This document shows positions 14,942 to 25,447 of a DNA stretch of 64,000 bases, in pieces (the stretch's first letter is position 1; each line of letters begins with the position of its first letter). The translations under genes were made by a program, and so were the position numbers. The notes below the pieces were generated by a model that was not told the DNA's origin, ran no database searches, and worked only from the letters and a program-made list of their open reading frames with translations. The stretch is from Ruditapes philippinarum (lineage: Eukaryota), in the NCBI RefSeq assembly GCF_026571515.1, contig NW_026853736.1:1-64000 (forward strand). Direction: 5' to 3'.

Positions 14942-16637
14942 TTATAATATTTTGAACTTTTGCATTTTTTTATCACCAGTTTGAAACAACACAAAACGAA
15001 TTACATGGTGAGACACAGATAAACGTGGGGTATCTTATATCTACCTTGAAGGTTGATAAGATTTCGCCAATTCGAGATATTTGAACAATGCTGTGTGTCC
15101 TTGCACTGCAAACAAGGATAGTGTCAGAGGGACCAACTGCTACACCACGTGGTTGCTGAATCTGGTCATCCTTCACTACTACTTGTGTGTTTGTCTTGAT
15201 ATCATATAAGTAGACAACGTTTTCATACCTATCTGTGAGAACAATCGTGTGTGCACTTTTTACATATGTGCAAGCACTTGCACGTTCAAGATATTTTGTG
15301 TACGGGAAATTGACATTGAAATCGTCCTCTTCTCCAGAAGGTGATACGATGCGAACGTGCCGTACATCATCAAAAGTCCCTGCAACAAAATGTTCTTCAT
15401 CTTTCAGACATATAGAGCAGTACTTTGTCTTCACCTGGCAAGTTCTATTCAATGATATCTTATTATTATCGCTTATTTTCAAAAAATCTATTTTATAACA
15501 TTCACCGCTTGTCACTACCACATCTTCATTAGAAACAACAGCAAGGTCTCTAGGTGTGTAAGAAAACTGATATGAACCTACTTTCTCAAGCTTCTCATTG
15601 TAAACTAAGCATTTCTTATTATTACTATCAACGGCAATCAGTCTACCATCAGGTAGAAGATCTAATCCAGCATACAGTGGTTCATTAGGTTCATCCTCAT
15701 TTTGCTTCAAATCTATGGAAATAACTGGTGTTAGTTTCATTGGACTCAAAGTTTTTAAAGGTTCTAACTTCAAAGTCAGTTGACCCGGCACATAACTAGA
15801 AGTCGGCAGTAGGGACATGTCCAATTTGTCATCAAATTTGAAAGAAATTACCACGGTCTCTAAGGCTTGACATTCTGCATTGACTTTGGTGAAAAGATTA
15901 TTAACATCTTCTTGCATTTTCTTTTCTACAATAAATTGCTGGACCGACGTACCATTTTTATACACGTTATTAATGGTTTCAAGATTTTGTGTTGCGTCAG
16001 CTACGTATTCCTCATTCTTTGATTGCTTCTTATCAAGCTGTGCAATAGTCTCTGTCTTAAATTCCTCAACTTTCTTTACAACAGAAGCCTCCAAATCTTC
16101 GAACATTTCAATAACTCTGTCTCGCTTTCGCCTTATTGTTCCGGGTATTTCTTTAGCATCAAGTTGAACTTGCCCTTTTGCCGAGATAATCGATTTTACA
16201 ACATGCTCTGCATTTTCCTTAACTTCTTGCCATTTTCCCTTTAAGCTTGATCCTTGAGAAGTAAACATTCCGGCGATCTTCTGTACTTCAACAACACTGT
16301 GACATTTACGGTGGTCAACAATGGCACAAGTACTGCAGCACAGCTGGTCTTCATCTTCACAAAAGAATTCTACAAGTTTTTGATGCTGATCGCATTGATC
16401 TAATCCTTTCATATCAATCATTCCTTGTTTCGCTTTTACTTCACTGACATTGACCAATTTGTGCGTTTTCAAGATGGAAAGCATGGCATGTACATTTGAA
16501 CAATCTATACACTGGTATTCATTACAAGTTGAACAAAACTTATCTGCTACAATATGTTTATCCTTATTTTAACATGGCTGGCACAATATTTCCTGTACGC
16601 GCCCAGGGACTGCATCATGCCACCCACTTTCCGCCAT
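14942..16637 (-). pseudogene. Second TRIM-like (B-box/coiled-coil/NHL) copy with an early stop and a C-terminal frameshift; 503-aa residual ORF 14973-16484
   Basis: ATG at 16637 gives MAESGWHDAVPGRVQEILCQPC, then TAA (16569-16571) where the paralog has TTA. Near the end, an ~8-bp deletion shifts GDKKMQKFKIL* out of frame. Confidence 0.7.
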
Positions 16638-17765: not shown

Positions 17766-19715
17766 GCATAAAAGGCCCGTTTACGAGGTTGCATAAAGAA
17801 CATCTTTCGCTATACATGTATATCTCAATATCTCAATTACATTTTTCTCACTTCTCAGTTTGGTATATAGAGGACGTTGAATGAGTTTATGTTAAGTACC
17901 GATTTTTTAACAAGTTGAATAAAGTTTTCTTGCATAACAAACATCTCTCAACCTCACTCCTGTACAACAACTTGCGGTCTTTTATAAATGAATGGCTCGC
18001 CCAGGATGACGCCATATCGCCATTATGAATGAAGTCAAAAAGTACTTTTAGAAAACGTGTAATTTCGCCATTTTTTCCCGAACTAAACGTAATATACAAG
18101 AAAAAGAATCACTGTATGTCGTTACAAGAGGTTCTAAATTTACATCTGTTTTAATATAATCGATCGCAAAAATATGAAAAAAAGCAGCAAAGCTCTATTA
18201 AATCTAATGTTTTTATGGTTTGGATTTGTAAAACATGTGCAAACAGTTAATTGTGTATATAAGTAAGCACTGGCTAGAATGACGCCAACGAATGAATGCT
18301 TATATGACGAATGTAGCTAAATATAATATATGGCTACAATGAACAGAATTTGATATCTATTTAAACCCCATATCCGAAACAATGATTTATATGATGACTT
18401 CTCCATAGTGTTGAGGTTGATTGCTGGCGACATCCATTTTTGCGTATTAAATTGAGTTTAATGAATCTCATTTACAGCCTTAATACATTAGAACCAGTCT
18501 ACAAACATTGTTATGCGCATGCTTCACTTTTAATTACGACTTTACTAAAACGAAAAATTAAGACCGACTGTGAAATTTGAAAAGGCGTATTGTTTTTAGG
18601 ATAGTATATCTGGTCAACATTTTTACTCATTTCGTTGTAAAACAATTGGGTCATTAACAGCCCAGGTCATTAGCACAGTTCAGTTATTTTTGGATATGAT
18701 CATTCTACGTCACGCGGCAAGTAGAGGTCTTTCCCGGGCACACTTGTTCTAATTATAGCAAATTTGCACACTTTAAGTACTATTTTTTTAGAAAAAAATG
18801 TCAGATTTTATGAATGAAATTTCTGCTTTGTCTATATACAGGTTGCATGCACTTGATTGAAATGTTGAGCTATATAAAAGAGATTTTCTCAATTTATTTT
18901 TCTGCTGTTGACAAGTTTAAAGAATAGTTAATCAAAAGTTAGTGTACCAATCTTGTAAACCATAAACAGTACAAATATATTTCCTTTTTGCAAGTTTATG
19001 CTGCACTATGTTGCAAAATTGAAATGACTTCTTAAGCGAAGAATGACTGCAAAATCAAAACATGCAAAAGGTCAGATTTCAATTTTGAATCATCGTTCAT
19101 TTGGGGTTTTTAGTAGAGCTAGAATACTGAAAAACAAAGCATTACCCAATCATTTTTCAACAATTCATGTTTGTATTGAGCACATTATTGATCCGCGCAC
19201 AGGCACGGAGCTATTTGTGTTAACTATCTTTTTTGCCCATGGGCCCGGATTTTATCAATTAATCCCTTCGATTTACAGCTAAAAATAAATTCGGATTCAA
19301 GAACTCCTTCCGATTTTTATTATATTGGTTTCCCCTTCAGTGATTCGCAGCATGTCATATTAATGAATGAGAACCGGAAAGCAGTTCTGCTGTACATGAA
19401 TTCGAAAGCTATAAATAGCTGTATATAAATAAATGTTCTGATTTTTGACACTTATAAATTTGTTATTTCCCTTTTTTAGTAGTACATGAAATTATAATTT
19501 GTTACATTTTGAATTACATATACACACAGCATATCAAGTATACTATTAGTGATTGAATTTGTCAATATAAAGAAGATTTCAGGCATAAGACTGTAATAAT
19601 TTTGCTTTTGATAATTATTCTTAATTTATATTTATGAAACTAAATGTTTAATAATAACATGTTGATATATTGGTTGTTTTGAAATAATTATAACTTTAGT
19701 ATATAACGTTATAGT

Positions 19716-19824
19716 CTTCCGACTTCCCTTCGTGGCGTGCACGTCGCTCGGAAGGCATAGGTAACACCAGATGGGTGACCTATTTAGGTCATTTAGCTGG
19801 TGTGACCTAACCAACGACGAAGGG
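19716..19824 (+). ncRNA. Putative HDV/CPEB3-like self-cleaving ribozyme
   Basis: P1 CTTCCGA/TCGGAAG; P2 CCCTTCGTG/C(G)ACGAAGGG; P3 GCG/CGC; L3 TGCACGT; P1.1 GC/GC; long P4 hairpin 19758-19809; J4/2 CCAA. All elements occur in the canonical order. Confidence 0.68.
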
Positions 19825-20100
19825 TGTGGCCCTAAAGAGAGCTGCTGCTCCCGGAAGAGGTGCCTTTCCTCTTTTGTCAACCTTTGTTCAAGAAGCGAGG
19901 AATTGAGTCCTAGAGAAGGTCTACGACGAACGACAGCATGAAAAGACCTCCGTCGCGGCTCTACGACATCGACGACGTTGCAGGCGAATAAGTCCTCCGT
20001 TGCAGGCTCTACGTTACCAGCAATCGTAATAGAGGCCGACTAGTCTGGGACATATGGGAAACTGGCGCCCAGTATAAATAAAACCTAAAACAACAACAAC
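19716..20100 (+). mobile_element. Candidate ribozyme-headed non-autonomous retroelement
   Basis: Sharp GC-rich island in very AT-rich DNA that starts at the ribozyme fold, has no long ORF, carries an internal CCTCCGT.GC..GCTCTACG duplication, and ends AATAAAACCTAA(AAC)4. Confidence 0.5.
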
Positions 20101-21032
20101 AGCATCATTAGTATTGCATTGAGGAAAAGTAAATTTACACCACTTTGTGCTTCAAAATTAACTCTTTAAGGGCATGACTGGTGACATGTCAGGGTGACAT
20201 GTACTCGACAGCGAAAGCTGCAATTCGTGCCCTTACGATCAGATGGACCCTCATTAAGCATATGTTAAAGATAGATTGAAAGCATCATTGGTAACAACAG
20301 AACTTTGATCTGCAGTTTGAACATGAGGTGCAATGTTTTTTTATGAATGGTTTTAAAGCAATTCAACAAAAAGTATATTGATCTCCCAATAAATCAATTA
20401 ACAATAGTTTTTTAATATATCACCAATGTCAAGTAGCTTTTATTCTTTGACTCGCACGAACATGATGTTAGTGAATTTCCTCATACCTGCCTAAAATTCT
20501 ATTATAATCACCATGTAACGCGTGTATAACAAACAAAAATTCCTGAATTTGGTCTTTTTAAAATTAATCCCATTTTTTCATTCCTGTGTGTTCTACTTTC
20601 AGTATTGAAAGAAACCATTTTTTCTAAAATTTGACATGAAAAGAATGCATGTAATATTACTATATTAAAGTATATACATGTAGTCTCTTTTGTTACTATT
20701 TGTATATTTGTTACAATTATAATAATAAAAACACAGACTTTGATATTTTTATCATCTTATGTTACTGACTACAGTAGTTACACAAACAGGACACAGTACA
20801 GTCATGTCACATAACATTTACAAGTCTTGTAAGTATTGTTTGTATTCAATGGAATTACTTTCCTTACCAGGTAGGCATCAGTGAAAGCACTATTTTAAAT
20901 TAAATATCTGGCCCCTCTTTTTAATTATGGAAAGTGCATAAGATAAGTATAATTATGCAAAAAATGGTTTACAAAACATTCGGAAAAAATCTACAATAGT
21001 ACTTAATCTGAATATAACATGACCTGTGCGTA

Positions 21033-21445
21033 GGAATAATAATATCTGTCATATTTTGCGGTTCGGATCAGAATATCCGTCCTGAGGTGACCCGCCCATT
21101 GGGCTGTAACGAGGCTTGTCGAGTTACCGCCCATGGGCGGGTGACCGAGGGACGGATATTCCGATCCGGACCGCAAACATATGTCAGATATTTTTTCTTG
21201 CATATTCTACCATATTCCATTATACTTTAAATTCTTTATCTTTATTTTCAATGAAAATTAATATCATTACAACCATAACTACTTTCTTACAACGGCGTAT
21301 GAATTACAACTTCATTCATAACGGTAAAATGACGTCATCCTAATCGTGCCATTGTACAGCACGCGACTCATCTGGAACCCCCATGCCAGATGAAATTTCC
21401 GGCATGGGTAAAACTCACGGAAACGCCAGTCTGATATGCAAGAAT
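21033..21445 (+). mobile_element. Non-autonomous element with an internal ~165-bp palindrome
   Basis: AATATCTGTCATATTTTGCGGTTCGGATCAGAATATCCGTCC ... GGACGGATATTCCGATCCGGACCGCAAACATATGTCAGATATT; second copy at 17427-17765. Confidence 0.75.
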
Positions 21446-22129: not shown

Positions 22130-23790
22130 AGGTTACACTGATATACCGGAAGACTGCATATTGCACCTATTTTTCCGATGACTGGAGTTAACACCTGAAT
22201 TCCGAAAGATAGTAGTGGGCACCAGTATTCCGTAAGAGTGTTCCTTTTACCAGTATTCCAGAAGATTGTCGCGTGCAACAGTATTCCGGGAGATTGTAGC
22301 GTCAACAGTATTCCGGGAGATTGTAGCGTCAACAGTATTCCGGAAATTGTAGCGTGCACCAGTATTCCGAAGGAGTGTTGCTTTCACCAGTATTCAGGAA
22401 GATTGTAGCGTGCACCAGTATTCCGGAAAATTGCAGCGTGCACCAGTATTCCGAAGGAATGTTGCTTTCACCAGTATTCCGTCAGATTGGAGCGTGCATC
22501 AGTATTCCGTAAGATTGTAGCGTACACCAGTAGTCCGTAAGATTGCAGCGTGTACCAGTATTCCGGATGATTGTAGCGTGAACCATTATTCCGGAAAATA
22601 GTAGCGTGCACCAGTATTCCGTAAGAGTGTTGCTTTCACCAGTATTCCGGTAGATTGTAGCATGCACCAGTATTCCGTAAGATTGTAGCGTGCACCAGTA
22701 TTCCGTAAGATTGTACCTTTTACCAGTATTCCGGAAAATCGTAATCTTACTAGAAAACATGTTTTGTTTAAATGGACAAGAGATTGTACCTTTTACCAGT
22801 ATTTCGGAAAATCGTAGCGTGCACCAGTATTCCGGAATAGTGTTGCTTTCACCAGTATTCCGTAAGAGTGTTGCTTTCACCAGTATTTCGGAATAGTGTA
22901 GCGTGCACCAGTATTCCGAAGAGTGTAGCGTGCCACAGTATTCCGTAAGAGTGTAGCGTGCACCAGTATTCCGGAAAAGTGTAGCGTGCACCAGTATTCC
23001 GGAAGAGTGTAGCGTGCACCAGGATTTTGGAAAATTGAAGCTTGCACAAGTATTTCTGAAGATAGTAGCTTTCAACAGTAGTTGGGAAGAGTGTCGCTTC
23101 CACCAGTATTCCGGCAAATTGTAGCGTGAACCAGTATTCAAAAAAATTTAAGTTTTTATTAGTATGCTTGAAAATTGTAGGGTAATCCTTTAGTATTCAA
23201 GAAGTTTGTAGCTTGCAACCTTATTTTGAAAGATTGTAGTGTGTACCATTATTTTGAAAGATTGTTGCTAGCACCATTATTTTGGAAGATTATAACTTGC
23301 ACCATTAGTTTGGGGGATTGCAGCGTGATCCCTGAGTATTCCGGAAGATTGTATCTGGAAAGATTGTAGCTTGTTCCATAATTTGGAAATATTGTAGCAT
23401 GGACCATTATTTTTGAAGATTATAACTTGCATTATTTTGGAGGATTATAGCTTGCACCATTATTCTGGAAAATTTGTAGCGTGATCTCTGAGTATTCCGG
23501 AAGATTGAAGCGTGCACCATTATTTACAAAGATTGTAGCTTGTTCCATTTTTTTTAAAGATTGTAGATTGCGCCATTATTTTGAAAGATTATAACTTGCA
23601 CCATTATTTTTGACAATTTTAGATTGCAGGGGTGTTCTGGAAGATTGTTGTTTTTATGGACAATTGTAGCGTGCAGGGGTGTTCCGGAAGATTGTAGCTG
23701 GCACCATTTTTTTTTGAAAATTGTAGCTTGTACTGTACCATTATTTTGAACAATTGTAGAATGCGCCATTATTTTGGAAAATTGTATTGC
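22130..23790. repeat. 28-bp satellite array (~1.65 kb)
   Basis: Units GATTGTAGCGTGCACCAGTATTCCG(T/G)AA grading into GATTGTAGCTTGCACCATTATTTTGGAA. Confidence 0.93.
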
Positions 23791-24085: not shown

Positions 24086-25447
24086 CTAATTGTTTGATAT
24101 CAAAACCCCTGTAAAACTTGTCAATCGTTCACCCCATAAACTTCCATCTGCAGGATATATATGTTTAACCCAAACTTCGTCTCCAAGATTCATTTGAGCT
24201 GTCACAGTAACAGAACCTTGTGCATCCATTACCGAATTTCCTAGACCAAAGGCTTTCGCCAGAGGGAGACCATTTTTCGTTATCTGAGCATAGAGCTCTG
24301 TTCCAGACGTCAACACTGAAGTGGAAAAAAGATATATTCCGGCTTTTGGTGCAATAAATAAACCATGTTGACTGTGGTAGCCTCCACCTGTGTTAAGAAG
24401 AATTGTCTCAAATTTAATATTTTCATTTGTTCCAAGATGTGTAATTTTGCGCTTATCAGACACTGCATGGAATGCCACTGGACCCTCTATGTTAGCTACA
24501 AAACGTTTCTTACTCCGTTTTAATTGTTCTTTTCGATTTCGTATATTCCCATCCCCATTACTACGTGTTCTTTCGATAGATATAGGCATGTTTTTAACCA
24601 TTTGTTCACTAGATTTCTTGAATTTAAATGCCTCTTTTTTCGTTTGTGTTTCATTTTCATAAAAACTTGAGTTATTGGATGGTTTCCGGCTTTTATCAGA
24701 TACTGTGGGATTAACTTGTAACAGCATTTTGTCGTTATCATTACTTGTAAATTGTAGTAGATTTCTGCTTTCCTCTGACAACTTACTTAGGTCATGTTGA
24801 AGCTTGGTGTATCTTTTGTACTTTTCTTGTTGTGTATAAGAAAATTTTGCCGCGTCTTTCATGATGTTTTCAATAGTTTGATCCATGACTTGTATCTTTC
24901 TCTCCTGGTCAGCAAGTTGTTTCGTCAAACGATCAATTACTATGGATTTTTCTTTGTCTGAAATATAAGTCATGAAGTTCTCCAGAGTAAAGGTAAATTG
25001 TGTAGGTGTATTCATACAGCAAATTACCGTATCAAGACTTAAAACTGTTGTTTATCTTTTTTATGTACAAATTCAATCAATAATGATATATACAAAATTA
25101 AGGAGGTATTACATTGACATAACAGTAGCTTAGCGGCAAATTTCTGTCACATAGGCGGAAAAATTGCAACATGTACTGAGGAGCACTAAATCATAATAAT
25201 ATCCACATTCAATTTAGCAAATATGGCTTTGAATGGTATCTAATTCTCCATATGTTATCAACAGACTTAATAAAAAATGAAAAAGATAATATAAGAACTA
25301 TAAGTAAAACTGTACAAATTTACCTCTTTTTTCGAGAGTTTCCATCCTTTGAATCAAAGTCATTGTTCCGGAGCCGACATAACAAAAGGAAAATGGTAAC
25401 AGCAAAAGCATCAGCAGAAAGGAGTTTACGGCGTTATTCGGTGCCAT
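24086..25447 (-). CDS. Secreted C1q-domain protein, copy A2; exons 25324-25447 and 24086-24957; 331 aa
   Basis: Same exon lengths (124 + 872 nt) and phase-1 GT/AG sites as copy A1; complete gC1q domain. Confidence 0.92.

Follow-up and report, generated by a model that had tools for sequence, protein, structure and literature searches.

The window, the 64,000-nucleotide stretch of Ruditapes philippinarum DNA that was analyzed as a whole (contig NW_026853736.1, positions 1 to 64,000), carries a non-coding repeat of 386 bp on its plus strand (19716-20101). The repeat is located between two open reading frames of the opposite strand. One of them (503 aa, 14973-16484, minus strand) encodes a B-box zinc finger and an NHL repeat and is TRIM-like, and the other (309 aa, 24086-25015, minus strand) encodes a C1q domain. 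TRIM-like B-box/NHL and C1q families are expanded in bivalves. Two further repeats are found in the same interval. An inverted repeat (21055-21177) with 48-nt arms that are 85% complementary and 27 nt apart looks like a small foldback or MITE-like element. A tandem array of a 28-bp unit (22192-23628), with about 34 copies in the best row and degenerating towards 23628, overlaps an open reading frame (22482-23141, minus strand) for which no Pfam match was obtained.

Results

Predicted ribozyme fold at the 5′ end of the repeat

The first 109 nt of the repeat (19716-19824, plus strand) were assigned as a putative HDV-like ribozyme domain with a predicted cut 5′ of C19716, on the basis of the fold, a structural descriptor, and covariation with two sister families, B and D. 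All pairings that had been proposed in the initial annotation are present, and P1, P2, P3, P1.1, and P4 follow one another in the canonical order of a nested double pseudoknot with a 7-nt L3. P1 consists of seven Watson-Crick pairs between its 5′ strand, CTTCCGA (19716-19722), whose first base C19716 is position +1, and its 3′ strand, TCGGAAG (19748-19754). Beyond J1/2 (19723-19725), the 5′ strand of P2 (19726-19734) forms nine pairs with the 3′ strand (19815-19824), in which G19816 is bulged. P3 (GCG/CGC, 19735-37 and 19745-47) encloses L3 (TGCACGT, 19738-44), and G19739-C19740 within this loop make up one strand of P1.1. The other strand is J1/4 (GC, 19755-19756), giving two Watson-Crick pairs, G19739-C19756 and C19740-G19755. 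The P4 hairpin (19758-19809) contains 5 + 7 + 10 = 22 pairs in the minimum-free-energy fold. J4/2 (ACCAA, 19810-19814) displays the C-N-A-A arrangement as C19811-C-A-A, with the candidate catalytic C19811 three bases before P2.

The ribozyme region had a fold energy of -48.1 kcal/mol (z = -5.4 compared to shuffles). Using a relaxed descriptor that asked for a 7-bp P1, a 3-bp P3 around a 7-nt loop, a 2-bp P1.1, and C-N-A-A followed by a 7-bp P2, the site at 19716 was the sole match on both strands of the 64-kb window, and 100 dinucleotide shuffles yielded one match, corresponding to about 0.01 expected per window. Taken without comparative data, such a motif is suggestive and no proof; it is the comparative evidence described below that makes the assignment as a putative ribozyme solid. 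Searching Rfam at the gathering threshold gave no small-RNA or HDV-type match in the whole window. The search with HDV-like models that had been suggested earlier was unproductive for this copy, as the Rfam models gave nothing relevant in 19600-19950 at E values up to 10, and family B produced only a partial CPEB3 match of 9.9 bits against a gathering score of 35.

A repeat of the P1 3′ strand, CCGGAAG, was observed 3′ of the ribozyme (19851-19857), and in the minimum-free-energy fold of 19686-19860 its partner is the P1 5′ strand. Judging from this folding model, an alternative structure competing with the ribozyme, like that described for L1Tc, is possible.

The repeat is a short element with a uniform 5′ end

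The 109-nt head was used to search the 1.4-Gb assembly, and at least 40 copies with 96-97% identity over the head were found (from 210 candidates). Thirty loci of this family, family A, were fetched and aligned. In 30/30 loci the homology starts exactly at the base corresponding to C19716, and the DNA upstream is unrelated between copies. Across copies the element is about 380 bp long, and the window copy, with a sharp homology boundary at 19716 in the 30-copy alignment, ends near 20101. No open reading frame of at least 100 aa was found on the plus strand of the element.

Target-site duplications of 11-12 bp adjoin C+1. In nine copies no base separates the duplication from C+1 and the base next downstream is other than C, which makes C+1 the unambiguous first base of the element. 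Seven other copies carry 1-3 extra bases at the junction, among which G was not in excess in this small sample.

Close to its 3′ end, the element contains a stem-loop, CTGGG ... CCCAG (20045-20072), which in family B is found at the same place as CTCGG/CCGAG, a change on both strands. The start of its loop, ACATATGG, is conserved (window 20045-20083; B copies L039, L059, and L038). It is followed by TATAAATAAAA (20073-20083), a TATA-like box overlapping an AATAAA signal, and by a short A/C-rich repeat tail (20084-20101), which is (ACA)n here and (AC)n, (AAC)n, or (CTGA)n in other copies. At the 3′ end of some B copies, CTAAAATAAAC replaces TATAAATAAAC. The stem-loop is likely to be a handle for a partner reverse transcriptase. 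All 51 such 3′ stem-loops in the fetched DNA (51/51) belong to short elements, and none in that DNA was without a ribozyme about 330 nt upstream. In four 10-kb stretches, no long open reading frame was found downstream of B- or D-like ribozymes.

Like other ribozyme-headed non-autonomous elements, the repeat starts at the predicted cut, has no open reading frames, is flanked by target duplications, and ends in a 3′ tail. The boundary, the tail, and the duplications form the signature of a non-autonomous non-LTR retroelement, whose template would start at the predicted ribozyme cut. ARAGORN found no tRNA at 43 loci, there was no Rfam small-RNA match, and a TTTT run within the element (19872-19875) would terminate transcription by polymerase III. 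The repeat therefore does not correspond to a canonical SINE, which has a tRNA, 7SL, or 5S head and an internal polymerase III promoter.

The ribozyme was 100% identical among 29 A copies, but this identity is a sampling artefact, and it was dropped as a sign of selection because the copies had been picked by their similarity to that very 109-nt query. Logan contigs from three presumptive RNA runs, whose RNA status was guessed, contain the element with family-typical letters; they continue into the flanks of other copies and thus cannot show the 5′ end of an RNA. A metagenome scan for the core gave at least 120 stretches, which were GC-rich microbial chance matches, and a fully paired P1 (7/7) was present in none of the matches listed. 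At locus L002 (minus strand, about 1480-1900 as oriented), an A copy was found inside a B ribozyme, after the P1 and J1/2 of the latter, with the duplication TCCAAATCCCT.

Sister families share the core and differ in P1, P2, and P4

Related families were found by pattern searches of the genome, families D and C being read from the strings printed by the search. Because a MAFFT alignment did not bring the P1 strands of families A and B into register, pairs were counted by script and by eye. A pattern capturing mostly B gave 538 matches, compared to 0 for its reversed control, and a pattern capturing mostly D gave 191. Families A, B, and D have in common the core GCG-TGCACGT-CGC, with identical P3 and L3, the dinucleotide GC in J1/4, and A-C-N-A-A in J4/2, which is ACCAA in A and ACTAA in B and D.

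The helices around this core have been exchanged. P1 is CTTCCGA/TCGGAAG in family A, CTTCTCC/GGAGAAG in family B, and CTTCTCA/TGAGAAG in family D, so that positions 5-7 are changed on both strands between families and the pairing is kept. P2 is formed by CCCTTCGTG and C-(G)-ACGAAGGG in family A and by CCCCTCGGA and T-(G)-CCGAGGGG in family D, the G in parentheses being bulged in both; three two-strand changes separate them. Family B has a different P2 of 10 bp, CCCTCCAGAG and CTCTGGAGGG, which is fully paired. The basal stems of P4 comprise 13 bp in A and B and 14 bp in D; their sequences differ and all of them pair. In addition, the older A copy L050 has C-G for a T-A pair of P2, and a compensated P1, CTTCTCT/AGAGAAG, was seen at locus L046 only. 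The AGAGAAG and CGAGAAG variants, considered as further covarying families, were mostly B or D copies that had decayed through an uncompensated change, and were set aside.

Examining genomic copies for covariation, as had been proposed, gave a divided outcome. P1, P2, and P4 covary across families, whereas P3 and P1.1 are invariant in families A, B, and D of this genome, and these two helices therefore rest on analogy and not on covariation. In intact homologous copies, L3, J1/4, and the J4/2 cytosine are retained. The HDV/CPEB3-like reading of the initial annotation is thus supported by the coincidence of the predicted cut with the 5′ end of the repeat, by the two-strand changes in P1, P2, and P4 of families B and D, and by the constancy of these three core segments. 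Three sister families with one catalytic core and exchanged P1 and P2 constitute a natural covariation set.

Upstream sequence shared by 16/30 B loci was considered as a conserved promoter or a LINE and was rejected in both roles, since it derives from one B insertion that lies in a multicopy host repeat (about 2.3 kb) and was later multiplied passively. This insertion has the duplication TTTTGTTGAAA and lies 33 nt behind TATAAATA of the host repeat. Family B counts therefore overstate the number of retrotransposition events. The loci concerned are L033, L035, L036, L040-42, L044, L045, L047, L049, L051, L055-58, and L060, together with L061-L063. Within this multiplied group, the end pair of P2 shows a G-to-T change and then, in some copies, a C-to-A change on the other strand.

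P1.1, the base at +1, and the upstream flank

The initial annotation had described P1.1 as compensated. This holds relative to HDV (two C-G pairs) and CPEB3, in that one pair is flipped to G-C and both of its partners differ, and has no internal covariation support, the helix being invariant in this genome; a base other than G at position 2 of L3 was found in only 9 genome matches among A/B-type copies. The flipped pair was correctly recognized, yet it is less remarkable than was thought, because the composition of P1.1 varies among active HDV-like ribozymes. Solved structures of active members include P1.1 helices with U-A plus C-U or U-U (PMC13635239).

Position +1 is a C paired to G in families A, B, and D (C19716-G19754 in the window), and the G at +1 that would form a G-U wobble at the cleavage site is absent. 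In a review, G1 was called invariant and the G-U wobble essential (PMC8495972). In trypanosomatid HDV-like ribozymes, however, the GC pairs of P1 are reversed in orientation (PMC4035085), which makes G+1 typical and not universal in this class. C+1 had been noted as atypical, with L1Tc as a precedent. The C is real, as the target-site duplications show, and it is family-wide; the precedent is backed indirectly, through the reversed orientation of the P1 GC pairs (PMC4035085). If RNAs with C+1 cleave well, this would bear on the role of the G-U wobble in catalysis.

Just upstream of the predicted cut, G19714 and T19715 are able to pair with C19756 and G19755, as had been read from the sequence; this would lengthen P1 at the cost of P1.1, to which both J1/4 bases belong. 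Upstream bases that extend P1 reduce cleavage in L1Tc and R2 (PMC3185411; also PMC8495972), and by analogy a dampening of the window copy by G19714-T19715 is plausible.

State of the window copy and its host repeat

The core of the window copy is intact. Its three private substitutions all fall in P4, where A19763 creates a mismatch, T19792 produces a G-U wobble, and T19783 is a loop base. Over the whole element, the mean identity to other A copies is 95.6%; the copy is old.

The upstream flank is part of a very high-copy host repeat. The repeat was recognized at 19640-19711 and 20102-20262, and its copy number is above that of the element, with a word depth of up to about 360,000 in run X15, which was taken as DNA. 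A TATATAA box of the host repeat (19700-19706) starts 16 nt before +1. No clean duplication was seen around the window copy. In other copies of the host repeat, seen as loose contig ends in the large run X15 (taken as DNA), position 19711 is followed by 17 nt that are absent from the window and then by TGGT. The TAGT of the window (19712-19715) is therefore the remainder of the upstream duplication, and with the 17 missing nucleotides restored between 19711 and 19712 the box would start 33 nt before +1. The downstream copy of the duplication is GCATCATTAGT (20102-20112), and the uninterrupted host repeat at this place reads ...GGCATCATTGGT.... As a source of full-length RNA, the window copy is probably dead.

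Positions 20128-20262 of the window are 81% identical to the DNA that follows a D-like ribozyme element at L046:1934-2076 (= L064:5372-5514), and the similarity at L046 begins close behind a TATAAAG. Judging from this alignment, distinct ribozyme elements, the window's and the D-like one, may have inserted at an identical position in separate copies of a single host repeat.

Copies lie at a fixed distance from TATA boxes

Among 39 independent flanks of families A and B, 20 contain a TATAWA motif starting at -38 to -29, and 18 of these 20 start at -35 to -31. Control bins of 10 nt contained the motif in 0-1 of the 39 flanks. The A+T content of the same flanks peaks at 0.93 at -32 to -29, and TATAWA was found 20 times in forward orientation compared to 9 times in reverse. 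When TATAAA was allowed 18-48 nt upstream of family D copies, 33/41 matches were located at 31-36 nt, and genome-wide the commonest TATA spacing of family A is 33. The spacing of about 33 bp itself is established. tRNA genes were rejected as insertion targets, as there are none near the 43 loci.

The element also carries such a box at its own 3′ end. At locus L050 and in three D copies, the insertion is located 34-41 nt downstream of a TATAAATAAA at the 3′ end of a different element, and this motif is visibly a landing pad for further insertions. The end of the downstream target duplication follows the element's own TATAAATAAA after 33-45 bp (median 37), and the motif may provide a replacement TATA box for the host sequence that was displaced.

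The usual distance from a TATA box to the transcription start is 30-31 nt. Combined with the observed spacing, this puts the expected start of transcripts 2-5 nt ahead of the predicted ribozyme cut. A run of T4-5 soon after the ribozyme in both A and B makes polymerase III unlikely. The spacing could be set by a DNA-binding domain of the partner LINE, by tethering to TATA-binding factors, or by something else.

Discussion

We consider it very probable, from the comparison of sequences, that 19716-19824 is an HDV-like self-cleaving ribozyme module with a nested double pseudoknot, which trims the 5′ end of a 386-bp non-coding, non-autonomous non-LTR retroelement. In support of this reading, the repeat begins precisely at the predicted cut in 30/30 copies. 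The predicted topology, the covariation, and the coincidence with the 5′ end strongly support its inclusion in the HDV-like class, with C-G standing at the place of G1-U.

In the scheme that we propose, a copy would be transcribed from whichever promoter lies upstream, mostly a TATA box about 33 bp away, which would leave a leader of a few nucleotides. The ribozyme would then fold and cut 5′ of C+1, so that the host sequence is removed and any cap is lost as well. The RNA starting exactly at C+1 would be copied by the reverse transcriptase of a partner LINE, which probably recognizes the 3′ stem-loop and the short repeat tail, and insertion by target-primed reverse transcription would generate the target duplication of 11-12 bp. 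Cleavage, the polymerase, the partner LINE, and promoter capture are the parts of this scheme that we infer. On the further proposal, that integration at a fixed distance of about 33 bp 3′ of TATA boxes amounts to insertion at polymerase II start sites, such that each copy captures a promoter and the ribozyme removes a leader of a few nucleotides together with any cap, the considerations for and against are evenly balanced.

The TATA boxes also allow the uniform 5′ end to be explained differently. The structured head might not cut at all, and the end could be set by initiation of polymerase II some 30 nt beyond the captured box, with the pyrimidine-rich CTTCC or CTTCTC acting as the initiator and the fold serving stability, reverse transcriptase binding, or an internal promoter. 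With boxes that start 31-36 nt ahead of +1 in all three families, the start would fall within a few bases of +1, which alone could account for the uniform end; moreover, all families begin with C followed by pyrimidines, and the G1 regarded as invariant is missing. However, the conserved and covarying positions map one-to-one on the HDV topology, with L3, J1/4, and J4/2 unchanged and P1, P2, and P4 swapped on both strands. A distance of 30-31 nt from the box also predicts a start 2-5 nt upstream of +1, whereas the copies uniformly start at C+1, and the extra 5′ junction bases, a small sample, show no excess of G such as copying of a cap would give. We therefore regard an end set by transcription initiation as unlikely.

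It is still less probable, and in our opinion quite improbable, that the fold is a relic of a ribozyme that once worked in an ancestral LINE and that the present copies spread independently of it. The fetched DNA yielded no autonomous partner, many copies contain uncompensated changes, and the B insertion in the 2.3-kb host repeat was multiplied passively, all of which would fit a relic. Against this, three families with different helices have the same core, which points to a structure maintained through diversification, and in the young, near-identical A copies the core is intact and the 5′ end precise throughout. Chance resemblance to the HDV fold, for which a descriptor expectation of about 0.01 per 64-kb window, or about 200 per 1.4-Gb genome, might speak, is effectively refuted by the coincidence with the exact 5′ end of a repeat, the cross-family covariation, and the GC-rich conserved core.

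The closest systems known to a ribozyme-headed element of the kind proposed are L1TcRz in L1Tc/NARTc and the R2 ribozyme with the SIDE derivatives. An active trypanosomatid HDV-like ribozyme heads L1Tc and NARTc (PMC3185411, PMC3383444, PMC4035085). There, as here, the ribozyme occupies the first bases of the element with the cut 5′ of +1 (predicted in the present case), a short non-coding derivative retains the ribozyme and a conserved 3′ end, the lengthening of P1 by upstream bases comes at the expense of P1.1, and the orientation of the P1 GC pairs is reversed compared to HDV. L1Tc differs in having an internal promoter, Pr77, in the same 77 nt, whereas the present elements are found behind external TATA boxes. 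It also has one P1.1 pair instead of two G-C pairs, occurs in another host phylum, and has no detectable sequence relation to the bivalve elements.

In R2 and SIDE elements of insects and other animals, the 5′ end is cut out of a host co-transcript by an HDV-like ribozyme, as is predicted here, and the short derivatives likewise keep the ribozyme and the 3′ end, with a conserved core and a covarying P1 (PMC3774820, PMC3414825). Unlike the present elements, which occupy dispersed sites defined by TATA boxes with duplications of 11-12 bp, R2 resides at one 28S rDNA site and depends on polymerase I read-through.

The P3-L3-P3′ segment of the CPEB3 ribozyme (RF00622) is GCG-TTCACGT-CGC. The corresponding GCG-TGCACGT-CGC is nearly identical, the C-N-A-A of J4/2 is shared, and the weak partial Rfam match of family B covers just this segment. 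CPEB3 is, however, intronic and has a G at +1, compared to the C+1, the two Watson-Crick P1.1 pairs, the long P4, and the multicopy mobile element observed here. With the HDV ribozyme itself, the domain shares the order of helices, the catalytic cytosine three bases before P2, the L3 positions of the U...G reverse wobble, and a two-pair P1.1. It differs in the pair at the cut (G1-U37 in HDV, C-G here) and in one flipped P1.1 pair (C-G in HDV, G-C here); the sequence is otherwise unrelated, and here it is located in a cellular retroelement.

As to the choice of target, Ty3 inserts at polymerase III start sites and TRE5 upstream of tRNA genes, with integration guided by transcription factors. 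Ty3 and the Dictyostelium TRE5 elements resemble the present elements in inserting at a tightly set distance from a promoter element (PMC6673722, PMC5911963). Both differ in that their targets are polymerase III genes, and Ty3 is an LTR element without a ribozyme, whereas the elements described here are found behind a TATA box in DNA that has nothing else in common.

Retroelements headed by HDV-like ribozymes occur in insects, trypanosomes, and a few other animals. Trimming of a retroelement 5′ end by an HDV-like ribozyme is already known, and the present elements add a probable bivalve case. Unusual in this case are the exchange of P1 and P2 around one core in three sister families, the C-G pair at the predicted cut site in place of the supposedly essential G-U wobble, and the link to TATA boxes. 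An element that removes everything upstream of its first base has no promoter after cleavage, and the solutions known are residence in rRNA genes (R2) and an internal promoter (L1Tc). If it is true, insertion at a constant spacing from TATA boxes would add a third to these and represent a new kind of target choice for non-LTR elements.
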